Shown: positions 3,789-55,272 of the stretch, one piece after another | Layout: each line of letters starts with the position of its first letter | How positions within the stretch are numbered: position 1 is the stretch's first letter | Assembly (NCBI RefSeq): GCF_002113885.1 | Contig: NW_018408914.1 | Location: 256,731 to 320,730, forward strand | Direction of reading: 5' to 3' | Length of the DNA: 64,000 nucleotides | Source: Mizuhopecten yessoensis | Taxonomy: Eukaryota | Notes under the pieces: model-generated | What the model saw: the letters and a program-made list of their open reading frames with translations, nothing else | Database searches by the model: none | What the model was told of the DNA's origin: nothing | Position numbers and translations under genes: made by a program

Positions 3789-4456
3789 ATACTAGTTAAA
3801 GAATAATTAAAATTTTATACATCTACCAACAGAAACATGGAAAAACCCAGTAAACTAACAAAGTGGTTCTTTTGTTTACAAACTATCGAACAACTCACAT
3901 TGAAACCAAAAGGAGGGCGGTGAAGAAGGAGACCATTGCCAGACATTCTGTGATATTTATTGTCCTCTTGTTCAGATTCTAATTTTTCTAATTCTACAGA
4001 AAACATTTATGATTCAAGTTTTAAGTTGTTGCCTAAATCTTAAAGAAATAACATTATTTCAGGAACAGATATCTTATTTAACAAAGATTCTCGTCAAGTC
4101 AGTATTACTGAGTGCTAGCCGTTATACTTACTCAATACCAACCTCTGTCATGTTATAATTACCATCTCTCATACTCCACACAAAAATATGTCAAAATATT
4201 TATTGCAAATTTGATTTTTGTTGGTATTAAATAAAATTAAGTAAACACAGAGCATTGGGCTAAAAGTCGGGAAAGATATACTGTATTGGAAGTTCATATG
4301 CAAATTCTACACGAGTGCAAATGAAATTTGTTGAATGTTGATAAACTTCTACTGTGTGTGCTGGAGGAAGCTCCAGGACACGTGATAAGTATCAGTTATT
4401 TCTAGTTATTCTTATTTTGCCAATGTGTCTATAGTCATATAAAGTACTGTGATTCC

Positions 4457-4573
4457 GGACCTGTATCATAAACCAAGCTTTAGGTTAGCACCGAAATAAC
4501 TGTAACATATGAATAGTCCGTCCTAGTAAGTCAGTGCTAACGTCAAGCTTGTCAGTTTTCTGGTATAGGATCC
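4457..4573. mobile_element. Small degenerate MITE
   Basis: Nested inverted repeats: ggacctgtatcataaa / tttctggtataggatcc and aagctttaggttagcac / gtgctaacgtcaagctt. Confidence 0.55.
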
Positions 4574-5159
4574 ATTTGTAAATAAATAAAGCATTACAAT
4601 TCATCCACAAATACATGAAGTGTAATCCCTGTTGACAGTGTACTAAGTAGCCTTATGGGTGAGGGAACTCCAGTGGTAAAACACAAAGAATCACTTGAAA
4701 TTTTAAAACAATATTTTGGGAAAATGTCTGTATTCATAAAAACCATATTGGTGATGATTAAAAGTTGAACCCTAGAGAGTTCCAATCCTAGAGGCCCGCT
4801 CCTGTTACATTACTCGTGTTGTTAACCTATAATACTGTGCTCATACTTTAATCTACACTACATATAATAGTTCATTGTTTTAATAAATTATGGGCCCATA
4901 TTGTTTTCAGTATTTGGGTTTCTTCATATTGCCTTTAGATCTATTTGAAAAAATACAACTTTATGGTGTAAATAAAATGTACCAACTATTTTCAAGAAAA
5001 TGAATAAAGAAATACAGACATTGATTATGTTGTTTCTGTGATGGGTGCTGGCTTGTCCCTGTGTTGAACACTTGTATGTGATTACTGTTAACACAATATA
5101 TATGGACTGAATATGATAATAATTATTTGGGACAGAATGTATCAGTAATTGATGTAATG

Positions 5160-5692
5160 TTTGAGGCTGACTTGATACATTATTAACCTGTTGTTGGAGA
5201 TTGACTGTATACATTATTAACCTGTTGTTGGAGTCTGACTCCAAGTCAGCCTCCAACAACAGGTCAATAATGTATAGAGTCAGCCTCCAACAACAGGTTA
5301 ATAATGTATAGGGTCAGACTCCAACAACAGGTCAATAATGTATAGAGTCAGACTCCAACAACAGATTAATAATGTATAAAGTCAGTCTCCAACAACAGGT
5401 TAATAATGTATAGGGTCAGCCTCCAACAACAGGTTAATAATGTATAGGGTCAGACTCCAACAACAGGTTAATAATGTATAGGGTCAGACTCCAACAACAG
5501 GTCAATAATGTATAGAGTCAGACTCCAACAACAGGTTAATAATGTATAGGGTCAGACTCCAACAACAGGTTAATAATGTATAGGGTCAGACTCCAACACC
5601 AGATTAATAATGTATAAAGTCAGTCTCCAACAACAGGTTAATAATGAATAGGGTCAGACTCCAACAACAGATTAATAATGTATAAAGTCAGA
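5160..5692. repeat. 34-bp minisatellite (ctccaacaacaggttaataatgtatagggtcaga) whose first ~2 units are inverted
   Basis: Period 34 from ~5250; 5160-5243 is the reverse complement of the unit. Confidence 0.92.
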
Positions 5693-6030
5693 AAAGAATT
5701 TCTTCCTGGTTTTCATCTTGTATTTACACTAGTATGGTATGTAGTCGGTTTTAAATTGAAAATACAATAGCTGTTGAGCTATTCCTTCCCCCGGGCATCT
5801 AGTTTGAAATGTACAATTTCTTAGATGTTTGGATACATAGTAGTGTGACATGTATGTAGTGTTGTGTGTCATTCCATTACTAATCACTCCATAGTATTGT
5901 ATGTGTCTTAAAACAAAAGGAAGCGGACACACTCTTATTGGCATTACCAGGTTTTTTTTGTTTTTTTTTATAAAACTGACATTAACTCGTTATTTTTTTT
6001 TAGTAGACTGATTATTTGCAATTAAATTGT

Positions 6031-6068
6031 ATTTAAGCATGGAATTAGATCTAAGTCCGTGATTTAAG
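6031..6068. mobile_element. 24-bp transposon-end relic with 7-bp TSD (putative P-superfamily excision footprint)
   Basis: atttaag-CATGGAATTAGATCTAAGTCCGTG-atttaag. Confidence 0.7.
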
Positions 6069-6189
6069 TTAAATCAATAACAAATTGATATGGTGTAGTT
6101 TTTTCCTGCACCCTGCTGTATCCTGTCCGATGAGCCTGTCACTCTCGCTCCGAATCATCTAATCCATACATTGACCCGTCCATTACTGG

Positions 6190-6425
6190 CTACAGGTGTC
6201 CACGTCGACGTTCGTAGCGGTCAATTTACCCCACCGGTCCGTTTGCGGGTTGGGTCACGTGCCGCGGTATTGACCACCAGTGACGATGTGTTCCGGCAAT
6301 GTAACACCTGAGGAACACCTGATACCTTGTCAATACGGACCGTCAACACCTTTTAAAGACCAGGCTGTTCCGACTGTTGACACACCCCCTCCTCCCATTC
6401 ACCAGCTATTTATTTTACAGCTGTT
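6190..6425. promoter_or_regulatory. E-box cluster, candidate PRDM13 enhancer
   Basis: CAGGTG 6193, CACGTG 6256, CACCTG 6305 and 6316, CAGCTG 6418 in a CpG-rich non-coding island. Confidence 0.35.
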
Positions 6426-6789
6426 CTGTGTAGAAAGTAAATTGTCTAAATAATGACACAAACTTCTTCAAATATTTTGTTAGATTGAAAAATTCAATTA
6501 TCCGACCGGTTTGAAGCGTCATAGAAACGATGGAACAATAACAGTTTTATTCTGTAATGAGAACTGTTATTGTATTTTACATTGCAGTACACTGAAATAG
6601 TTCTAAATTGAAAACATTTTGTGCGTTTTGTTACCTTGTGTACAATCCTTTTGCTTTATTTCTGGCAATAGATATTTAAACTCATATCAACAATTCTCCG
6701 CCATACATTTCTTACTTTTAATAACATGTGTCATTCCATATACCTTGGTAAGATTATGTACCCTGTGCATAAATATAACTTAGGTATCG

Positions 6790-7405
6790 TTTTAGCTCAC
6801 CTGGCCTGAAGGGCAAAGTAAAAGCTTATGCCGTGCCGCGACGTCCGTCGTCCGTCCGTCAGGCGCCAACTTTTTTCTTAAAACGACTTTTTCTCGATAA
6901 CAAATAGGCTTTGGGTGATGATATTAGGCCGTAGCATGTAGGGGTGAAGGGCTGCAAAATTAGTTCAGATGAATGACATTGGCCCACTTTCAAGGTCACT
7001 AGGGTCAAATATGGTAAAATGTTTAAACGACTTTTCAATAACTAAAAGGCCCAGGGTGATGCTGTTTGACTAATGGCATGCATGGATGAAGGACTACCAA
7101 GTATGTTTAAATGAATCACACTGACTCACTCTCAGTGAAATGTGTGAATTTATAAATTTATTTCTAAATAGCCGTAAGGCAAAAGGTCGTTCTATTTGGC
7201 TAATAGCATGGAGGGGTAAAGGGCTACCAAAGTTTAAAAAATATTTGAAACAATTTCATATTAAAAACCAAAAGGCATAGGGTGGTTATATTTGGCCTAT
7301 AACTTAATTCAGACAATTTTAATATATTTTTCCTTAATACACTTTTAAGGTTACTGGCGTGAAATTAATATCAGGTGAGCGATGCAGGCCCATTGGATCT
7401 CTTGT
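6790..7405 (+). mobile_element. Non-autonomous Helentron-associated element (HINE; DINE-1/pearl-like architecture)
   Basis: Starts ttttaGCTCACCTG, (GTCC)n microsatellite ~6843-6860, degenerate internal ~115-bp repeats, ends with sub-terminal inverted CAGGTGAGC (7372-7380) and a short hairpin before cttgt. Confidence 0.8.
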
Positions 7406-7734
7406 ATTACTAATTTATTACACGATCCCTGTGTTATGTTTGTACTAAAGCCAATTATACAATGGTTACAAAAAATGGGTATGTACAATGTAGCCTCTGT
7501 TATTATATGGACTACAGTAAAAGTATCCTAATAGCACAGACCAACCTCCTTATATCGACATTGTCTACGTGTTGGCAGCTGTTCTTCAAACGTAAAATAA
7601 CGGTTTAGACGAAGTATACTTGGTGCAATTAAATTACATCCGTGAGTGTTCCATACTGAATACCTGAAAGCATTGGTCTACAACTATCGTTACAAAGGGA
7701 CAATTCTTAAACTGGTTGAGGCCCACCATGAATG

Positions 7735-7811
7735 AGTGGGGATTGGGTAGTGGAGGGTTGTGGATAGTGGGGATTGGGTAGTGGAGGATTGTGGTAGTGG
7801 GGATTGGGTAC
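7735..7811. repeat. ~30-bp G-rich repeat, about 2.5 copies
   Basis: gtggggattgggta occurs three times. Confidence 0.75.
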
Positions 7812-7859
7812 ATAGTTTGTTTGTCATGGTCCTTTTTCAACAACTAAAATATTGACACT

Positions 7860-8560
7860 TTAGGTAGTATGACACTCCACCCAGTCTCTGAAATGTCATA
7901 ACCTGGACACGGTAGTACGATACAATAACCGGTCACTGAGATGTCATAACCTGGACACGGTAGTACGATACAACACCCGGTCACTAAATTGTCATAACCT
8001 TGACCCGGTAGTACGATGCAACACCCGGTCACTGAAGTGTCATAACCTGGACACGGTAGTACGATACAATAAGCGGTCACTGAGATGTCATAACCTGGAC
8101 ACGGCAGTACGATACAACAACCGGTCACTGAAATGTCATAACCTGGACACGGTAGTACGACACAACACCCGGTCACTAAATTGTCTTAACCTGGACACGG
8201 TAGTACGATGCAACACCCGGTCACTGAGATATCATAACCTGGACACGGTAGAACGATACAACACCCTGTCACTGAAATGTCATAACCTGCAAAAGGTAGC
8301 ATGACACTCCACCCGGTCACTGAATATAACATTCTGGACACGGTTGTATGACACTCCAACCGGTCACTGAAATGTCATTACCTGGACACGGTAGTACGAC
8401 ACAACACCCTGCCACTGAAATGTCATTACCTGGACACGGTAGTACGACACAACACCCTGTCACTGAAATGTCATAACCCGGACACGGTAGTATGACACTC
8501 TACCCGGTCACTGAGATGTCATAACCTGGACACGGTAGTATGACACTCCACCCAGTCACA
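7860..8560. repeat. 48-bp minisatellite (cacccggtcactgaaatgtcataacctggacacggtagtacgatacaa)
   Basis: Direct inspection; 16-aa periodicity in the overlapping ORF. Confidence 0.92.
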
Positions 8561-10489
8561 TTATTCTGACAACAGGCTATAGCATGAGAAGTCACCGAAA
8601 ATAAAGAGTAAGAAAGATGTCCCAAGTACGGCCGTGGGGGCAGCAACACTAGTTTGAATTTTCCACTGAGGAGGAGAAATTTTACAAAAAAAAACCGATC
8701 CTGCATATAGACCCAAGATTAGTCGCCTCGTACGATCAATCAGTTCCATTATTTCCCCGAACCTGTGCAGGTTGTACTGCACCGGTTTTGAAAGAGTGAG
8801 AATTGGGTTGAGGTTGATTAACGATAGTAAGGATCTTGAATAGGTTACGGTAGGAATGGGGAAGGGCTGTACCGGTTTATGATGATTCGGCAGTACCGAA
8901 CACGAATGGTTAGAGTTACAGTTCTGTGCGTGTAAATCGAGACAAGATAACGATAAGCGAAAGTGTCCATAGGCAGTTGACTGCAACATAACTTACCGAC
9001 AGTTCAAACACATCGCGAAAAATTACAAACAAGGTGGTAAGAGTCGCTATATAATGTCAAAAGTAATGGAACCGAAACGAAATAATGCCTCTCGTTGGTT
9101 ATTAGCAGAGAGTTGCTTAGGTGTCGGTGGTGATGATGGGAGTATTGGACCTTGTACAAACACTCAGATCATCGCACTCCGCTGGATTAACGAAGTAAAG
9201 AGTGAAATTTATCAACAGAACTGACACGACATCTCATTACTTCTGAATGGCCATTACTGTGTATTGTCTCCTAAACCACTCGACTTTTATAAAAACACAA
9301 CCATATGGTAAAAAGTGATAAAATTGTAAATAGTTGTCACTATAACCCTCAGCCTGCTTGGAGCCGAATGACTTTGTCAGGAATGTGAGCTAGATGGCCG
9401 TGTTGCATTGTGTATGACAATTAATTGATGAAAAGAACAGCTTTTTGGGTCTTAACCGTTGAGGTGATAGGAGAAAACGGTGAGAATCCCGGTGCAGTTT
9501 AACACATGCTAAAGTATGTAAAACAGCACACCATTCACCATTCGCCAACGCCTCCAATTAAAAACGTATAAAATTCTTCACTCCGAAGCAGGTAGTCAGG
9601 GAGAGCCGGTTTATTTGGAGCAATTCTTTAATAACCATAATGTTTCTTTTTCAAACAATAATGACGACCGACGTTGATACGAGATCCGCCTTTCTGCGCA
9701 TGTTGACGAAACAAACATGGCCACGTGCCAACGCGCGCTCACTGCACGCGCACATGTATCATTTTCGTGTAAATCTAGTTTCACTTGATGTTATTTAAAA
9801 TTGCAGAGTGATACGTCAACGCTAGAAGAACAGACTATGGTGTATGTAATTTGACCAACATCGACGTTCCGGGTGTATGCTTCGACAGAAATTCTAGACC
9901 GTTGATTCGGTAAAAAGATATTTTAGGGAAAGTCCACTGAAACGTTTATGACCAAAGTTCTAACTCTTTACGACCTAACCTAACAGTGTCTTTATTAATA
10001 TTCCAATAAACTAAGCGGTCAGACTCGATAGATTTGGGTGTCCTCGGTCCGTTTCATCTTGGTTGCGCGCTTTATATCCGGTGCATGGTACTTGATTTCT
10101 TTCAGACGCACTTCTCCGCACCGTTACACACCGATGGAGACACTAGTCTTTTGTTTTTTATTTGTCCACAATTAAACTGGTAGTTTTACGGAGATGAATA
10201 TCTTTATAATTTATCGTTGACGTTATTATGGCTTTGGCCTTATTTATGATTAGTTTTACGAACCGTAGCCAAATTTTTATTGTCATAAATGTGCAGTTTT
10301 TAATTTTGATTTTCAATTTTAAGAAAATTAAAGAAAGAAAGAAAACTAGCTTAATATCGAATTTGAAATGGATCTGACAGCAAAAGGTCCTGGCAATGTT
10401 AGGATAGGGAAGTAGTGTTTATTATAGCTGCTAATATCGATTGTGTTATACAAGTACAAGTGATCATGGCACGATAACGGCACATAACA

Positions 10490-11610
10490 TCCCATCCGCC
10501 TTCAGTACATTATCTCCCGGCCCGCTTCCGATACAAAATCTCCAGTCCGCCTTCATTACATAGTCTTCCGTCGGCCTTTAGTACATTATCAGCTGGCCCG
10601 CCTCTGGTACATCATCTCCCGGGCCGCCTCCTGTACATCATCTCCCGGTCGGCCTCCGGTACAAAGTCTCTTGTCCGTATCCGTTGCATAGTCTTCTGTC
10701 GGCCTTTAGTAGTACATAATCGCCCGTCCACCTCTGTTTCATAGTCTTCCGTCCACCTCCGCTTCATAGTTTCCTGTCCTTTTTCAGTATACATTAACAG
10801 CCGATCCGCCTCCGGTACATGATACCCTGGTCCGTCTCCAGCACATCGTCTCCCTGTCCGTAACCGGTACATAATCTCCCAGTCACATCCGGTACATTTG
10901 ATGTCTCTGTCCATCTCAAATACTTCATATCCCGGTGTGTCTCCGTCACTTCGCATAGCCGCCACTTCCATTACATCATCTGCTGGTCCGCCTCCGGTCT
11001 GTTATCTCCCGGTCCGCCTCCGGTACATCATCTGCTGGTCCGCCTCCGGTAAATAATCTCCCGGTCCGCCTCCGGTACATCATCTCCCGGTCCGCCTCTG
11101 GTACATCATCTCCCGGTCCGCCTCCAGTACATCATCCCCGGTACATCATCTCCGGTACATCATCTCCCGGTCCGCCTCCAGTACATCATCCCCGATTCGC
11201 GTCCGGTACATCATCTCCCGGTCCGGTACATCATCCCCGGTCCGCCTCCGGTACATCATCTCCCAGTCCGCCTCCGGTACATCAACTCTCGATCCGCCTC
11301 CAGTACATCATCCCCCGGTCCGCCTCCGGTACATCATCTCCCTGTCCGCCTCCGGTACATCAACTCTCGATCCGCCTCCGTTACATCATCTCCGGTACAT
11401 CATCTCCCGGTCTACCTCCGGTATATCATCTCCCGGTCCGCCTCCAGTACATCATCTCCCGGTCTACCTCCGGTACATCATCCCCCAGACTCATTTCGGT
11501 ACGTCATCTGCTGGTTAGCCTCAGTTATATCATTTGCCGATTTGCTTCTAGCACATCGCGTTCGCCTTCAATTCTGCCTCCGGTACATCATCTCTCTGTC
11601 CGCCTCCGAA
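10490..11610. repeat. 26-bp GC-rich minisatellite (ccggtacatcatctcccggtccgcct)
   Basis: Homogeneous core ~10980-11480 with strongly diverged flanking units. Confidence 0.9.
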
Positions 11611-14411
11611 ACGATTCCTGTACATAAGCTCTTGCTCGTATCCGGCACAGCACCTTCCAGTCAACCTTGTTGTCGTGTACTTTTACGCGTTTGACACAGC
11701 CACACAACCATTAGTAATCATTTATTTGTCGGCAAAAACAATTTAAATTTAACTTATTCAGACTGAAACAAAATTAAACGACTTTGTATATTATATTTGA
11801 ACTTTAGATAGTAGTTGAATTCACCGGATGGCACGTGCAGACTGATGTTTGCTGCCCGGGGGGTACTGATGACAATTGTACCTGGCCCGGGGCTACTGAC
11901 AATCCACGACCTACCCGGAATCACAGATGCACTCTATTCAATGTGTAAGTGGTATCTTACCGATAACCTGATCTAGACACACGCTTTGTAGTTAATCAGA
12001 TGTTCGTTTTGTTTCAGTTTATACCATAAATATAAAACCGCATAGTGCATACCCGGAAGTGATGACACAACTGATACGTTACTCGTACTCTAGACTTAAG
12101 GTTTACTCATCCGTCCTTACTGGGAGCCAGCAGGTAGCAGTTGGTCTTCAATTCATAGATATAATTTCAATATTTTTCACATCAAGATTGTCATGTAAAG
12201 ATTATCTAGTCCGGAAACGGTGTCTTAGACCGTTGCACAGAGCACAGCTGTAGTGGGTAAACAAATGGCGCTGTCATCACTCGGGCGCTAGTGTCACCTG
12301 AATTTATGTTTTCATTCAATTGAACATAACTTAAACGGAAAAGAGATTATATATATAAATTCTATTACAACATCTAAAGACCTGTTTGGTACAGCGATTG
12401 TATTCTATCGAATCATCAGTTGACAGTGGTGGTGGTGGTGGTGGTGGTGGCCTTTTAGACAATATATAAGATATGTCCAACATGAGGTGGCTTATAAGAC
12501 ACCATCTCTGCTGTTTTGTCTAAAGTCCTGTTGTGAAAGTCATTTTACAATCTAAGAATATATCTGTTGCTGATAGTTTCGCTACTTTTACACATTGTTT
12601 TGCCACGTGACATGACATACGTAATATTCTTAACCACGTGACATTAGCAGTAGCGTTTCTATAGTGACCACGTGACATATGCACTTCTTATTATTATTTT
12701 GCAGTATCATGAATTATCAATTTGGTAAAAACAAGTGTTAATAGCCCCCTGTAAAACTTTAAGTGTTATATTGTATATGTGATGACGTAAAGATGTCCGT
12801 ATCACTACGCGCGCGATATTGACTTAACGACTACATAGTGATACCGTCAGGGCGCATTTCGGACGGTGACTGGCTATGCCCGGGCTCATTTAAATATTCT
12901 AATTCGATGTCGATCAAACGTCATTCTAAAACAATAATGTCCAAATTTTCAAGTTTTTCTTTCTTGGGAAAATCGGCCGTTATATTTGATTGTATAGTTA
13001 GAGATATTGTTGAAAATTTGAGAAATCAAGCACTTGTATGAGGGAATTCCCAATTACCGGCATTCAGATCCTATAAAGACAAAGCAACATGGATTATTTT
13101 CACAAAAAACACAAAATGTGCAAATAACAGACACCGAAGTATGAAAAAAATAATTGATGATTCAAATATAAAAACTATAATATAACATACTATGTATAGC
13201 ATACTGAAAGAAACATTCCGCTTATATCTACCTGGATGGTCAAGTGTTTTGGGACTATTACATTACTAGTGTAGTACATAGCAATGCGATTGTGTTATAA
13301 AAGTGTGTAGAACTGTTAACTGTTTTATGTTTTATTGTGTCTAAAACACGCATTATATGACCTGATATTGAATGAAACTGTATTTTAATCTTCAAAACAG
13401 CTAATCTTTCCCTCCCCCACTTTTAAAAAAAATGCAGTTTTTTGTGTATAAAAAAAAAGCTCCTACCTAATCTCAGTTGTAAACTAGAATTGCTTCAGTG
13501 CCTATCACAAACACATTCGGAAATTGTAAGTTTTGAACGATATATCACATTTAGATGCGATTGGACTATAAATAAAGCATCAGCAAATATGATGTATTTG
13601 GAAACCGGGCTTTTTAAATTTTTAAAATGTAATAAAATAGAAAATGAAATGGTTTCCTGTTTAATAACAAATATACTTCATAAATAGCAGTTTGAAAATA
13701 AATTTTCTTTATTATTCACGCAATATCATATGTTTGTACATTATGTATATTTGCATATTAATCATGACAGATAATAAGTTCTGTTATTGTCACTTTCACA
13801 CGTACAACGCATAAGTTCACATGATGTGCGAGTCGTACATAGGCTCGAACACCATTCAATGGCTATGTCACTAGACGCTATATTAAGCGTAAGCCAAATG
13901 GTTAGAACTGCACTTTTATACGTATAATCATATAAATACATTTTTGAAAGTTTTTACATTCGTGCGATATTGTTTACGCATAGTCACAAATTAAGGGTTA
14001 AGATCATAAACAATCGCTCCGAAGATCTTGGAATATCAATAAAAAATAGATTAAAAAGAAAGAGTAATCAGTAAATTTCTAACGGTTGAAATGCATGTAG
14101 TTTTATTCTCAGACGTGATGGATGATTTCTGTAATATCAAAGAAACTTAAAGACTAGATTTGACATTAAGCTATAGAAGAGGCGATACGATCTAGCTTAG
14201 TTGTGACACATTGGACAATGTGCCACTTCTCAACAAATTATTACAAAACTATATGAATTGCATTAACAGCAGGATGAGCGACGATATTCAGATACTAATC
14301 ATCAGCGCATGCGTCGGCTCAGCAGTGTATCGCAGACCAAATACCGCGAAATGGAGAAAGTTTATATCGCCATGGTAACGCATCTATTGTCAAGACGGCG
14401 CACGGGCGGTT

Positions 14412-23569: not shown

Positions 23570-23935
23570 TGTATATGTTACTTGTCGAGTGCATACACGT
23601 ATCTATGTTACTTGTCACGTGTATACATAGGCGTATGTTACCGGTTATGTATCGTATTTTACCTGTTATGTGTATCACACATATATGTGTTACCTATCAC
23701 GTGCATACACGTACATGTATTTTACGTGTCATATGTATGCTACCTGTCACGTGTATATACACGTATGAATGTTAGTTATCACGTGTATACACGTGTGTTT
23801 GTTACCTGTCACGTGTATACACGTATGTATGTAACCTGTCACGTGTATACACGTATGTGTGTTACCTGTCACGTGTATATACGTATGTATGTAACATGTC
23901 ACGTGTATACACGTATGTGTATTACGTGTTACGGT
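23570..23935. repeat. 30-bp minisatellite in probable PRDM13 3' UTR (gttacctgtcacgtgtatacacgtatgtat)
   Basis: Period 30; core units contain the palindrome ACGTGTATACACGT. Confidence 0.88.
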
Positions 23936-24202
23936 TAAACACGTAAGAATGTTAGCCGAAAAGTATGCGTTGGTAGGATTATTGTCATACGTGAATATAT
24001 ATGAATAAATATTACCACTCAAATTATTGCTCCATTGTTTTTCCGTATCAGTCCTAATAGAACGCCAGTATTTCAATTGTTTTGTTCATGGACTTACAAA
24101 AGTAATATTGAAAACCATGGTATACTGGTACTTATGACAACGAGTTACACAACTTGTTTTCATATTGGCCTAAACAGGAATGGCAACAGCTACTTATTTT
24201 AT

Positions 24203-24249
24203 ATTTTCGCACGGAATTAGATTAGATTTATCTAAGTCCGTGATTTTCG
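24203..24249. mobile_element. 33-bp transposon-end relic with 7-bp TSD (putative P-superfamily excision footprint)
   Basis: attttcg-CACGGAATTAGATTAGATTTATCTAAGTCCGTG-attttcg. Confidence 0.75.
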
Positions 24250-24329
24250 TGAATAGTCATTGATAAACAAAAATGTTTATATACACATTCATGTCTGCAT
24301 GTACCATTATAACAAAGGTGTATAATTAA

Positions 24330-24460
24330 ATAAATTGTAATGTTCGAAAACTGAGGAGCAATAAATATAATGTTCGAATACTGAGGAACAGTAAATTGTT
24401 ATGTTCGAATACTGACGAACAGTAAATTGTAATGTTGGAATACTGAGGAACAGTAAATTG
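24330..24460. repeat. ~31-bp repeat, 4 copies (taaattgtaatgttcgaatactgaggaacag)
   Basis: Direct inspection. Confidence 0.8.
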
Positions 24461-25345
24461 ACTACTGCTCGGCAAAAGATATTAGAAAGATGACTGTTGT
24501 ATGGTGTATACTCTAAGAAAAGTTATTTTGTTTGGTGAAAACCATTAGAAAAGTTACTGTGAGAAAATGTATTATACTATTTAAAAAGTAACCAATATTT
24601 GGTAACTATAAGAAAAGTTACAATGGTTCAGTAAAACTGTCAGAAAAAATGTTATTACTGATTCGTAAAATAATATGAGAACTAGATGATGTTTGAAGTC
24701 ATAAGTATGCACAGACTCCTGCTTTAATAAAAATGAAGCTTAACGCAAAGTTAAATGCAAAGTTTGACCAAAGTCAGTGATGAGTAAAATACAGGTCACG
24801 GTGACCTACATTCGATATTGGCGCATATCCTACGCCACATGAAACTTAACTTATTACTTACAAGATCCTAAAAAGAAAATTATCTGGCATTTCAAACCAC
24901 AAGTTCCGAAAAAACGCTATCGTCGGCAGTGACAGTAAGAACTGGGGAGTAAAGGTAAAATACTACATGTAGCTCTACCCATTGGCTCGGTCCATGTGAC
25001 GTGTCATGTGATGCAATGACTTAACTCCTGAAACTATAGTCCGGTTAAAATTATTTACAACATCTATCCTTTGATTCAAAAACAGTAGCATTTATTGTAG
25101 CTTTACTTTTGTACATGGAAAGCGTTAATAACGATAACACATACAAATGTGTCGTTCGTTTTACTGTACTTTGATTAAATTTACCATGCATCGATAAGAA
25201 TTAACGTGCATTTAAATAAAAAAAATTGATTGGCTTAATTTGGGAAACATAGAAATGCTCGACACAGCTGGCAGTTAATGTAAACCATCCACAGATCTGC
25301 CATTAAAAACTGGTCCACTTATTGACTGAATCCTGAGAGACAACA

Positions 25346-28990: not shown

Positions 28991-29054
28991 ATGCACCTAT
29001 AAATCGTCTACTTACCCGGGACTTTTGCTCCTGTTGTGGGCGGTATGTACTTAC

Positions 29055-30639
29055 CCTGTGAATTGATGTTGAGGGTAGGCTGGGGAATATCCATGGGAGA
29101 TCGAGACCGCGTGTCACTACTAATAGAGATACTCCGGGAGAATGTTTTGGACTGTGAGACAGGAAGCTGTAACCGCTGTATCTTCAAGTCATCATCTTCT
29201 TCCTCCCGGGACCAGCTGTCGGGTAGGGTAGCGTTTGGACATTTTTCAACATATCCTGGCTCCTCCTTGATTCTGTTTAAACTTGAATTAAACAATGGCG
29301 TGCTTTTCTCACTTTCAGTTTTGAGTGATTCTCTAGCAGAATGGGAAAAAGACACAAACGCGTTAATGTTTCGGTCAGCTTCCGGTGACTGTGATATGTA
29401 AGTCAGTGTGTTGTGCGATGTGGGAGATCCGGATGAGGAGGGTAAGTGGGTCGTGTAGCTCTCGGACAGTAAGGACTCGGCCGGGGGGTTGAGCGCGGCA
29501 CGGGGGAGGCCCGTGATGTCGCGGATCATGCGGACAAGATCACTGAGTTTGTTAACGCCCATAGCGCATGTCCGATACCATGCCTGCACGGGGGACGGAT
29601 GGAGAGTTGTTATACCAAGATAAAATGGCGAGTTTTCGTGCTGCATATTTGGAGGTCGTTTTTGGCTGTAGAGTTTGTATATTCCGACTGGATCTCGCTC
29701 GGGTACCTCTGGTTGAGCCCATATACAAAGCTTCGTGTACGATGAACGACATTGCTCGGGCTTGGCAGATGTGGTGTTGGTGGTGTTTGCGGTAGTTGCT
29801 TGTGTGTTTGAAGAGGAGGTGGCGCCATCGATCTGACCACGGCTAAGGATAGGCTCATATAGAATATATTCCTTCCCGCTCTGGTCCGCCCGAAGTTTAA
29901 TATCGCCCCAGACTAGGTTCTTGTGGTCTATCGCCTTTCGCAAACGGAAGTGGACGATGAACATGAAACACATACTGTTAATGATAGACATTGGTGTGTA
30001 TGGTCCCATCTCCCGTGCGGTAAACAATTGGTTGACCTTGTCCAAAGTCACTTTGCCAAAGGGTTCATTGGGTTTTTTGCTGCCCTTACCAAGCTCTCGT
30101 AACCTCTGTTGCTTGTATTTGAGCGCGTGTCGTGTGTTTACGAAAACCACATCGCGGGTAACAGAGGCCTGGTAGCTCTTCATCTTCAGATACCGCTCCA
30201 CGCTACAAAGCATGCCCCTCAGACTGGCCGGCTCGTACTCATTCCCGTCGTGTTTTTTGACGATAGTGAAGAAGTTAGATAGATACCTGTCAAGTTCCAG
30301 GGGAGGAATCGTCTCCGGCGGTCGGGAATCGTTGAGAGATCTGAGATAGGCTATCAAAATCCGAATGTCCGTGTCAGTCTTACGTTGGGTATTCCGGTTT
30401 TCCATGTTGATGCCAAGGTCGTCTTCCGTATCCGGCCCTCCATAATCGGAATAGTTACCGATGCCAGAGCTACTGGGGTGAGCATGCTCCTTACGTGCAG
30501 AAATCCCAGACCATAAGCGATGGTTTTCTGTCATCACATTTTCTTCAGTAGAATCGTCTACCTGGTCCTCGTCGCTGTCTATCGCCAATGAGTCGTCGTC
30601 TGAGTCATTGTCTGTCCTACTTTCGTTGACTTTCTCCAT
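29055..30639 (-). CDS. KIAA1958/ZMYM/QRICH1-like DUF3504 (Crypton tyrosine-recombinase-derived) protein, first coding exon
   Basis: ENRNTQRKT...LDRYLSNFFTIVKKHDGNEYEPASLRGMLCSVERYL...LRELGKG...FRLRKAIDHKNLVWGDI...RDPVGIYKLYSQKRP...PFYLG...WYRTCAMGVNKL follows the Crypton-A/DUF3504 pattern; donor G|gtaagt phase 1; joined CDS 1585+153+1091=2829 nt = 942 aa. Confidence 0.88.
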
Positions 30640-31050: not shown

Positions 31051-31295
31051 CTGAGCCCCTATTCATGAAACCGTTCTCCTGCTCAAGCATGGATCCTGTG
31101 CTCAAACCAACTTTCTTGTAACTCGATTAAATCATGTCAAACGATCAATACGTCAAATGTAAACATTGAAAACAGTATTTAAGTTTAAGTCTCAAAGAAA
31201 GACTTATTTATCAATTTATAACCAGAAGAAGAAATTAGGCTTGAGCACAAACTCCATGCTTAAGCATGAGAACGGTTTCATGAATACATGCCCTG
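31051..31295. mobile_element. MITE with ~65-bp imperfect TIRs, probably PIF/Harbinger-like
   Basis: tattcatgaaaccgttctc-tgct-aagcatgga...tgtgctcaa is inverted at the right end; CTG at both boundaries. Confidence 0.8.
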
Positions 31296-32944: not shown

Positions 32945-32989
32945 CTTCTAGCACGGACTTAGATAACTAATCTAATTCCGTGCTTCTAG
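32945..32989. mobile_element. 31-bp transposon-end relic with 7-bp TSD (putative P-superfamily excision footprint, opposite orientation)
   Basis: cttctag-CACGGACTTAGATAACTAATCTAATTCCGTG-cttctag. Confidence 0.75.
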
Positions 32990-33244
32990 TAGGCATAAGA
33001 TTCCTTTAATTGACACAAACATACTGAAATAACTTTAGTAGAGTACGTATATTTTTTAAACCTATATAATTTACGTTTTGAATAATCATCAAACCTTGCT
33101 TATGTGTTGTATATAGGCAACCGATGGTCTGCTGATATATGTTACTGGTCACTTCAGAGTGTGAATGGTCTAATAATGATACAGGTGATATCAACAGGTG
33201 AGGAGGCCTGACTGCGGGGCTAGATGTCATCATGACCGCAACTT

Positions 33245-33402
33245 TCACTGCGCATTCAACTTGCGCATATCAAACCAATATGGAAGACAGCGTTACGACA
33301 GGTGTCAGCTGAGACGGAGTATGAAAACAAAACTTTTTGGAAGTATTATGCTTTGATGTTGACTGTTTGTTGCATGGTTTCAACCTTTGATTTTCAAATG
33401 AG
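33245..33402 (+). promoter_or_regulatory. Candidate promoter and non-coding first exon of the downstream + strand gene
   Basis: Paired TGCGCA motifs at ~33250-33268, then donor-like GAG|gtaaac at 33402; acceptor tgtgtttcAG at 34354 precedes the ATG at 34446. Confidence 0.35.
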
Positions 33403-34445
33403 GTAAACAACAACATTTGTTATCGCTACAAATTCTTTATCCAACCGATGTTGGCTTTGTTATTGTTTCATTCATACGCATAGGAATTTGACTTAGTTGA
33501 CGAATACTGTAGTAGAGTAGACCCCACTGTAGTAATATTTCGGTTGGGATCAGTCTGCAACATATACCGAATTTCTGCATACTAACAAATCTTAAATAGA
33601 TTATAACAGCTTTCACTGCAGAATGTATCATTTCGTCAGGTTCCTCCTTTGTCGAATGCCAAAAGTCTTGGTCGGTTTTAACTGTTTAAGGGGTGTGTAT
33701 CATGGTATGAGGGTGTGTATTGCACTGGAAGTCATGTAGGCCTACTGTGTATGATCAGCATGCATAGGCTACGTAACAATTAACAACCGATTTATGTTGT
33801 CTGCGTGATGTTATTTGAATTAAATATCATTAAACTAATCGAATTATGCAACTTAAAATTGTTAAAACTGATTGTCTGCGGTCTGTAATAAGATTTGTTC
33901 AGTGTGTAAATGTCATTCCATTACAAGATGAACAAGATGACAAAAGAAGGGAAGTCGTCAGGTCTGTAGTTCAGCACATGCATAACAAGATATATGCGAT
34001 GTGTAAATATGTGAAATAATGTCTCTTGAAACTGCATGCTTGATCCAGTTTGTTGTTTATAGTGTTACTCTGTTACTTAGGTTTGACCAGTCAATCAAAA
34101 CATAATGAGGAATCAGTCACTCACTCAGATGATGTAATTGATGAACCAATAAGTTACCAGCTACAATTTCTTGGTTCTCTTGGCACACATTAATTTTCTG
34201 TATGACCTGGTATGCATACCGTATTAGGGATGTTTTGGACTTAGCAAAAAATTGATCGCTACTAAGGTTATGAGTATAAGGCTACTTCTTTTAATGTCTA
34301 TATATTACAAAATTTAACTTTCATAGTAGATTTTATTTGCATTATGTGTTTCAGTTCACAAATTCGCAGCAAGATTATGGAAGTGAGTTTCTGAGGTGTT
34401 CACATCGAACTTTTGACAGGGTTGTGATGTTTGTAGTACCATAAC

Positions 34446-35099: not shown

Positions 35100-35585
35100 G
35101 GTTGATATTATGGCTGTATATCAAGCCAGTTGATATTATCGCTGTCTATTTATATAATTAGCCAGTATATATTTAGCCAGTAGATATTATGGCTGTCTAT
35201 TTAGCCAGTTGATATTATGGCTGTATATTTTGCCAGTTGATATTATGGCTGTCTATTTAGCCAGTATATATTATCGCTGTATATTTAGCCAGTATATATT
35301 ATCGCTGTATATTTAGCCAGTATATATTATCGCTGTATGTTTAGCCAGTATATATTATCGCTGTATATTTAGCCAGTAGATATTATCTCTGTATATTTAT
35401 ATAATTAGCCAGTAGATATTATGGCTGTCTATTTATATAATTAGCCAGTAGATATTATGGCTGTCTATTTAGCCAGTTGATATTATGGCTGTATATTTAG
35501 CCAGTTGATATTATGGCTGTCTATTTAGCCAGTATATATTATCGCTGTATATTTAGCCAGTAGATATTATCTCTGTATATTTATG
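35100..35585. repeat. 28-bp minisatellite (tttagccagtagatattatggctgtata)
   Basis: Period 28. Confidence 0.9.
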
Positions 35586-54083: not shown

Positions 54084-55272
54084 TATGTGTTATAACTGTT
54101 TTATATACTCTACATGTTATATAAAACAATTATAACACATATAGGGTATATAAAACAGTTATAACACATATAGGGTATATAAAACTGTTATAACACATAG
54201 AGTATATAAAACAGTTATAACACATAGAGTATATAAAACAGTTATAACACATAGGGTTTATAAAATAGTTATAACACATAGAGTATATAAAACAGTTATA
54301 ACACATAGGGTTTATAACTATTTTATAAACCCTATGGGTTATAACTGTTTTATATACTCTACATGTTATATAAAACAATTATAACCCATATAGGGTATAT
54401 AAAACAGTTGTAACACATATAGGGTATATAAAACTGTTATAACACATAGGGTATGTAAAACAGTTATAACACATATAGGGTATATAAAACTGTTGTAACA
54501 CATAGAGTATATAAAACAGTTATAACACATATAGGGTATATAAAACTGTTATAACACATATGGTATATAAAACTGTTATAACACATAGGGTATATAAAAC
54601 TTATAACACATAGGGTATATAAAACAGTTATAACACATAGGGTATATGAAACTGTTATAACACATAGGGTATATAAAACTGTTATAACACATATGGTATA
54701 TAAAACTGTTATAACACATAGGGTATATAAAACTGTTATAACACATAGGGTATATAAAACTTATAACACATAGGGTATATAAAACAGTTATAACACATAG
54801 GGTATATAAAACAGTTATGACACATAGGGTATATAAAACTTATAATACATAGGGTATATAAAAGAGTTATAACACATAGGGTATATAAAACTGTTATAAC
54901 ACATAGGGTATATAAAACTTATAACACATAGGGTATATAAAACAGTTATAACACATATGGTATATGAAACTGTTATAACACATAGGGTAAATAAAACAGT
55001 TATAACACATAGGTTAAAGGTATATAAAACAGTTATAACACATAGGGTATATAAAACTTATAACACATAGGGTATATAAAACAGTTATAACACATAGGAT
55101 ATATAAAACAGTTATAACACATAGGGTATATAAAACAGTTATAACACATAGGGTATATAAAACTGGTATAACACATAGGGTATATAAAACTGTTATAACA
55201 TGTAAGATATATAAAACTGTTATAACACATAGGGTATATAAAACTGTTATAACACATAGGGTATATAAAACT
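54084..55272. repeat. ~27-31-bp AT-rich minisatellite (gttataacacatagggtatataaaac) with inverted units near its left end
   Basis: Direct inspection; fold-back segments at ~54084-54141 and ~54333-54390. Confidence 0.93.

Follow-up and report, generated by a model that had tools for sequence, protein, structure and literature searches.

The 64-kb stretch of DNA from the Yesso scallop Mizuhopecten yessoensis (scaffold NEDP02005587.1) analysed here (hereafter the window) contains a PRDM13-like, a Rabin8-like and a Crypton-derived gene, and three short structures built from the same two ends, each enclosed by a perfect 7-bp direct repeat. These structures (referred to as L1, L2 and L3, at 6031-6068, 24203-24249 and 32945-32989 respectively) are found near genes, one of them 8.5 kb upstream of the PRDM13-like gene and L2 0.7 kb past its stop codon, while L3 is in a divergent intergenic region, 2.3 kb upstream of the start codon of the Crypton-derived gene. 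An open reading frame at 29008-30639 is 100% identical to LOC110467324. Between the Rabin8-like and the Crypton-derived genes is a non-coding block (33158-33504) with 81% identity to Pecten maximus (positions 6787-7140 of its orthologous region, L001), which is probably a promoter or enhancer and which lies 170 bp from L3. Several other repeats occur in the window: a 30-bp tandem repeat of 7.4 copies just past the PRDM13-like stop codon (23732-23954), rich in CACGTG/TATACACG; a 31-bp tandem repeat of 4.2 copies (24331-24460) that may vary in copy number; and, at 54097-55241 and 35259-35518, extended arrays whose tandem units measure about 27 bp and 28 bp and which yield numerous false TIR/TSD pairs when scanned naively. 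There is also, on the upstream side of the Crypton-derived gene, a 207-bp element (31070-31276) with TIRs matching at 10/11 positions (ACCGTTCTCC...) and a perfect 8-bp duplication (TTCATGAA), which may be a hAT-type MITE.

The inserts at L1, L2 and L3 consist of only two slightly different ends of one element, A and B, joined head to head into a short imperfect palindrome. L1, on the plus strand, consists of two atttaag copies and, between them, a 24-bp insert (6038-6061) made of 13 nt of the A end and 13 nt of the B end with an AT microhomology in common, the A end carrying a CpG-to-TpG change (CATGG). L2, also on the plus strand, has identical copies of attttcg at 24203-24209 and 24243-24249, and between them a 33-bp insert (24210-24242) in which an A end of at most 18 nt (24210-24227) is followed by the reverse complement of a 15-nt B end (24228-24242). 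L3 is on the minus strand, with the element in the opposite orientation; here cttctag flanks a 31-bp insert (32952-32982) of 16 nt of A and 16 nt of B with one G in common, the commonest form genome-wide, and its reverse complement is L2 less two central bases. Three neighbouring copies therefore have three different junctions. Position 7 (A versus C) and the letters beyond position 13 set the A and B ends apart. At each locus the two copies of the target site duplication (TSD) are kept, with nothing but remnants of the element ends between them; the 7-bp repeats are perfect at all three, and the eighth base never matches, in keeping with the 7-8 bp duplicated by the P superfamily. The original prediction, which placed the same two ends inside perfect 7-bp repeats at 6031, 24203 and 32945, describes these loci correctly; its division of L2 into about 17 nt of A and about 16 nt of B is one of several equivalent readings, of which 18 + 15 fits the other variants best.

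The three loci are real rather than chance resemblances, because a 13-mer common to both ends (CAYGGAMTTAGAT) has exact matches in the window at the six ends of L1-L3 and nowhere else (about 0.008 matches are expected by our own estimate), and because a structural scan for a perfect 7-bp repeat, CA..TG termini and palindromic arms returned three structures in the real window against none in each of 30 Markov-simulated windows. All three are likewise present in locus L003 of assembly GCA_002113885.2, which lies wholly within the window. No further scar family of the same type was found in the 64 kb by the structural and TIR/TSD scans.

We placed Logan contigs from four individuals, each from a different study, on positions 23926-24525, a section that covers L2 only. 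In all four individuals a gap-free contig spans L2 and its flanks and the scar is unchanged, so that the L2 scar is shared by, and fixed across, these animals; where the original prediction had called for empty or full alleles, the four carry the scar allele alone and neither alternative. Over 24206-24245 the depth rises from 7-15 to 3,800-12,500, which is 550-1,100 times that of the single-copy flanks, and 170-198 contigs per individual are placed over L2. Summed contig word depth being a rough proxy for copy number, we take this as several hundred to about a thousand copies in the genome that are at least 88% like L2, a count that excludes shorter scars such as L1. Since the loose flanks of the other copies agree only to about 0.45, these copies lie in unrelated sequence contexts, and a larger repeat enclosing the palindrome was rejected on the same grounds. 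A second pile-up at 24366-24465 (8-10-fold, short contigs, three of the four individuals) corresponds to the 31-bp tandem repeat and is unrelated to the scars. In runs X2 and X16, contigs at 24228 come from another locus, where a scar copy is broken by 31 letters comprising a second B-type end, a 7-base spacer and an end of a CAGAGACGT family, a sequence unlike the A and B ends of L1-L3; scars from two families thus lie side by side there, or one within the other.

A very large genome-wide number had been predicted from the presence of three copies in about 27 kb, an extrapolation that does not hold because these three form a local cluster, about 100 times denser than the genome mean, from which about 0.1 copies would be expected per 64 kb against the three seen.

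The genome-wide copies differ from one another in a very particular way. Across the four individuals no substitution within 24210-24242 reaches 5% of depth, which means that an A end is always paired with a B end, and both CpGs of a copy are mostly intact genome-wide, L1 with its CATGG being one decayed example. Indels that reach 5% of depth all fall at 24224-24227, the exact centre of L2, and comprise minus 1, minus 2, minus 4, plus G and plus TG classes. Among these, the minus-2 class at 24226 is the 31-bp form of L3 and makes up about 44% of depth, and the minus-1 class at 24224 accounts for about 19%. The resulting lengths are 29, 31, 32, 33, 34 and 35 bp, with nothing longer at that share. 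Within the window and genome-wide alike, the junction varies between copies and the retained ends are constant.

With the longest form read as an 18-nt A end and a 17-nt B end, we tested the other forms as an A prefix joined to a B prefix. Nine of the ten forms are a prefix of the 18-nt A end joined to a prefix of the 17-nt B end with an overlap of 0-2 nt, a decomposition that is partly circular because A and B were read off the longest variant and any central deletion yields prefixes. The 35-bp form is 18 + 17; the 34-bp form is 18 + 17 with 1 nt in common; the 33-bp form (L2) is 18 + 15; the 32-bp form is 18 + 15 with 1 nt in common; the 31-bp form of L3 is 16 + 16 sharing a G, and a second 31-bp form is 18 + 14 with 1 nt in common; the 29-bp form is 18 + 13 and the 24-bp form (L1) 13 + 13, both with AT in common. 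The minus-1 class at 24224 fits this scheme only if three of its letters are left unexplained or a further parental subfamily is assumed. As the longest class with at least 5% of depth is 35 bp, the ends retained are at most 18 and 17 nt, measured against parental ends that are themselves deduced, and the predicted cap near 17 nt per end, like a long staggered cut, is consistent with the 29-35 bp classes, none of which holds more than about 17-18 nt of either end.

The flanks of the other copies also carry a consistent target site. A consensus was derived for each run from 49-57 left and 35-45 right contig ends, as consensus strings rather than per-position counts; in each of the four it reads ...TA GT(T/A)(T/A)AAC (TA-GTTTAAC) to the left of the element and GTAAAAC-TA to its right. 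G and C stand at TSD positions 1 and 7 on both sides of an otherwise A/T consensus, the other exceptions being single letters in two runs. Judging from these flanks, the target of the scar family is the 7-bp palindrome GTT-N-AAC, which has the palindromic GT...AC form of P-superfamily targets. The three TSDs in the window fit GTTNAAC loosely, at 2-4 of the six specified positions. That all three end in G, which had been noted at the outset, is a small-sample coincidence: G is the last TSD base in 11-17 contigs, compared with 49-57 contigs that have a different base there, C being the commonest. Among characterized elements, Drosophila 1360, a member of the P superfamily, has exactly this target, GTTNAAC, and a 7-bp TSD (Linheiro and Bergman, PMC3276498 Table 4), Galileo has the similar GTANTAC with a 7-bp TSD (PMC4168063; PMC3698922), and the P element itself has the target motif GTCCGGAC (PMC3276498).

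Taken with the arrangement of the ends, we consider it probable that the three loci are excision scars of a family of the P superfamily. A parent element was not found in the 64-kb window, either by searches for single ends with up to two mismatches and for shorter end motifs or among TIR pairs with 7/8-bp TSDs up to 6 kb apart (many matches of the latter being tandem-repeat artefacts), and Pfam scans of 20 open reading frames in the window returned no THAP or P-type transposase, an enzyme of this superfamily having an N-terminal THAP domain and a P-type RNase H fold with a GTP-binding insertion. Because neither parent nor transposase was recovered, it is on the target site and the geometry that the assignment to the P superfamily is based. 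The original reading of the loci as fossil P-type scars is thus upheld at its core, by the invariant arms and variable junction, the GTTNAAC target and the P-like architecture, and its part concerning a parent element with a THAP/P transposase was not borne out within the 64 kb.

That the transposase was not seen leaves some room for scars or mini-elements of another superfamily with 7-bp duplications, such as hAT, Mutator, Dada or one not yet described, the more so as targets of the GT..AC type also occur in hAT (hobo, GTNCGNAC; PMC3276498). Against this, GTTNAAC over exactly 7 bp is the motif of 1360, and Mutator duplicates 8-9 bp and forms flank hairpins, whose scars consist of a few bases from the flank instead of 15-18 nt from each element end (PMC5499845). 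We regard an origin from such a superfamily as very improbable. The hAT elements likewise make 8-9 bp duplications and flank hairpins, and leave a few flank-derived bases rather than 15-18 nt of element ends.

Another explanation is that nothing was excised, and that the 31-35 bp unit is a mobile "nano-MITE" that itself transposes in trans, each copy being a primary insertion with its own 7-bp duplication. MITEs are typically 50-800 bp long and can be mobilised in trans, and to our knowledge none near 24-35 bp has been described. The perfect TSDs at L1-L3 and the failure to find a parent in the window would suit such a unit, as would several hundred copies with near-identical arms, and the predominance of one 31-bp form is what amplification of a fixed mini-element would give; conserved arms with a variable centre are also expected of a young MITE family with several master copies. 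However, MITEs carry non-coding internal sequence between their TIRs, whereas the inserts here are 24-35 bp without internal sequence and far smaller than any described MITE; there are at least seven length classes, which differ at the exact centre only, and each of three neighbouring copies has its own junction. A single fixed-length mini-MITE, named in the original prediction as the outcome that would count against scars, is accordingly weakened by length variation confined to the junction, although the share of the one 31-bp form still speaks for it. Nor do these units contain the subterminal THAP sites that P-type transposases require. In addition, a DNA of 31-35 bp could not be expected to bend far enough for a single transpososome to take up both its ends, and strands excised at a 17-nt stagger would have no overlap at all (both points argued from PMC7776569). 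On balance we find a self-mobile unit rather unlikely. Were the 31-35 bp units mobile after all, they would be the smallest transposable elements known, consisting of two 15-18 nt ends moved by a P-like transposase, and would overturn the P-type need for subterminal THAP sites and for a duplex longer than twice the stagger; we hold this to be decidedly unlikely.

Under the preferred reading of excision scars, a P-superfamily cut-and-paste element (1360/Galileo-like, with a 7-bp GTT-N-AAC-like target) would have inserted at each site and later been excised, its enzyme presumably cutting, as Drosophila P transposase does, within the element, about 17-18 nt from each terminus on the non-transferred strand. 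What sets the fly enzyme apart is the 17-nt stagger of its cut (PMC7776569), so that the donor is left with 3' tails of 17 nt that are not complementary to each other. Each flank in the scallop would then keep the target duplication and a 3' tail consisting of the last 17-18 nt of the element, and end joining would trim these non-complementary tails by 0-5 nt, align them on 0-2 nt of microhomology and seal them, with a predicted product of 24-35 bp, an A end followed by a B end, that has an intact target copy on either side. By the same reasoning the scars should be inert and immobile, because an element shorter than twice the stagger would not be releasable as a duplex and one of at most 35 bp could not bend to synapse its ends.

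Junctions of this structure are documented in the repair of Drosophila P{wa}: between the two TSD copies stand no more than 17 nt of the left and no more than 17 nt of the right end, which meet at a microhomology of 0-3 nt or are separated by 1-2 added bases (PMC2895639). Of 68 independent P{wa} events, 14 gave one and the same junction with an AT microhomology (PMC2895639 Table 1), and a dominant scar form is therefore expected from independent excisions as well. The units could alternatively be extreme internal deletions left by interrupted gap repair, that is, synthesis-dependent strand annealing (SDSA) followed by end joining rather than direct joining of the tails; most wild-type P{wa} repair products in Drosophila arise by SDSA and end joining (PMC2895639), and internally deleted P elements are common. 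Such repair, however, spreads its breakpoints over hundreds of bases, while no class with at least 5% of depth exceeds 35 bp here, and retained ends that stop at 17-18 nt are the signature of joining at the tails themselves. We therefore give interrupted gap repair hardly any weight.

The local density of copies can be read in a similar light. The P element is documented to hop locally over 50-150 kb and to prefer promoters, and the cluster of three fits both habits; three different junctions within 27 kb may be the trail of a locally hopping element. The events are lineage-specific, because no scars of this kind occur in the orthologous segments from Pecten maximus (L001) and Argopecten irradians (L004). 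Only exons and a few conserved blocks of the window align with Pecten maximus, the flanks of L3 not being among them, and the intergenic DNA of the Pecten maximus and Argopecten irradians regions has no alignment to the window. Metagenome, viral and prokaryote genome collections yielded no match to the scar pattern. A survey of bivalve transposons that used 17 superfamily profiles including P obtained matches for 16 and lists no curated P family (PMC10294476).

Compared with known systems, the scallop scars are most similar to Drosophila P-element footprints, in which two target copies are kept and only the outermost 17 nt or less of each end is retained; the P{wa} ends are joined bluntly, on 0-3 nt of microhomology or with 1-2 nt added, a few junction types recurring (PMC2895639), and the scallop scars are alike in this. 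In contrast, the P{wa} junctions were made in the laboratory at a single locus, where 8 bp are duplicated, whereas the scallop scars are natural, mostly fixed or shared, spread over several hundred loci and flanked by 7 bp; their end sequences are unrelated, the host is a mollusc, and the retained A end may reach 18 nt. With 1360 (Hoppel) and Galileo they share the 7-bp duplication and the palindromic GTTNAAC or GTANTAC target, but the ends have no sequence similarity and the scallop family is known here without its transposase. We found no account in the literature of the donor cleavage geometry of 1360 or Galileo. Similar to MITEs such as BuT5, a P-element MITE of the Drosophila repleta group, the scallop units are non-coding and combine DNA-transposon ends and TSDs with high copy number; BuT5, however, is about 1 kb long with a subterminal THAP-binding sequence (PMC3698922), while the scallop units are 24-35 bp without internal sequence and vary at the junction only.

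The mechanism proposed for the scars is the textbook P-element footprint and is already known. What is new is a natural, genome-scale set of P-type footprints in a mollusc, from a lineage with 7-bp TSDs, and we found no paper in the literature that describes such a set. Cut-and-paste excision is normally invisible in genomes because the scars of most superfamilies are only a few bases long. P-type scars, at about 30 bp and with two recognisable ends, are long enough to count, date and map, and those of the scallop would record how often the family was excised and how far it hopped, as well as how the germ line of a lophotrochozoan joins non-complementary 3' tails. Repeat annotators will miss these units, which sit near genes. 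The scars further suggest that the 17-nt stagger of Drosophila P transposase is common to the mollusc 7-bp-TSD lineage; if so, this stagger may be old in the superfamily, which bears on the abilities of THAP9-type enzymes.
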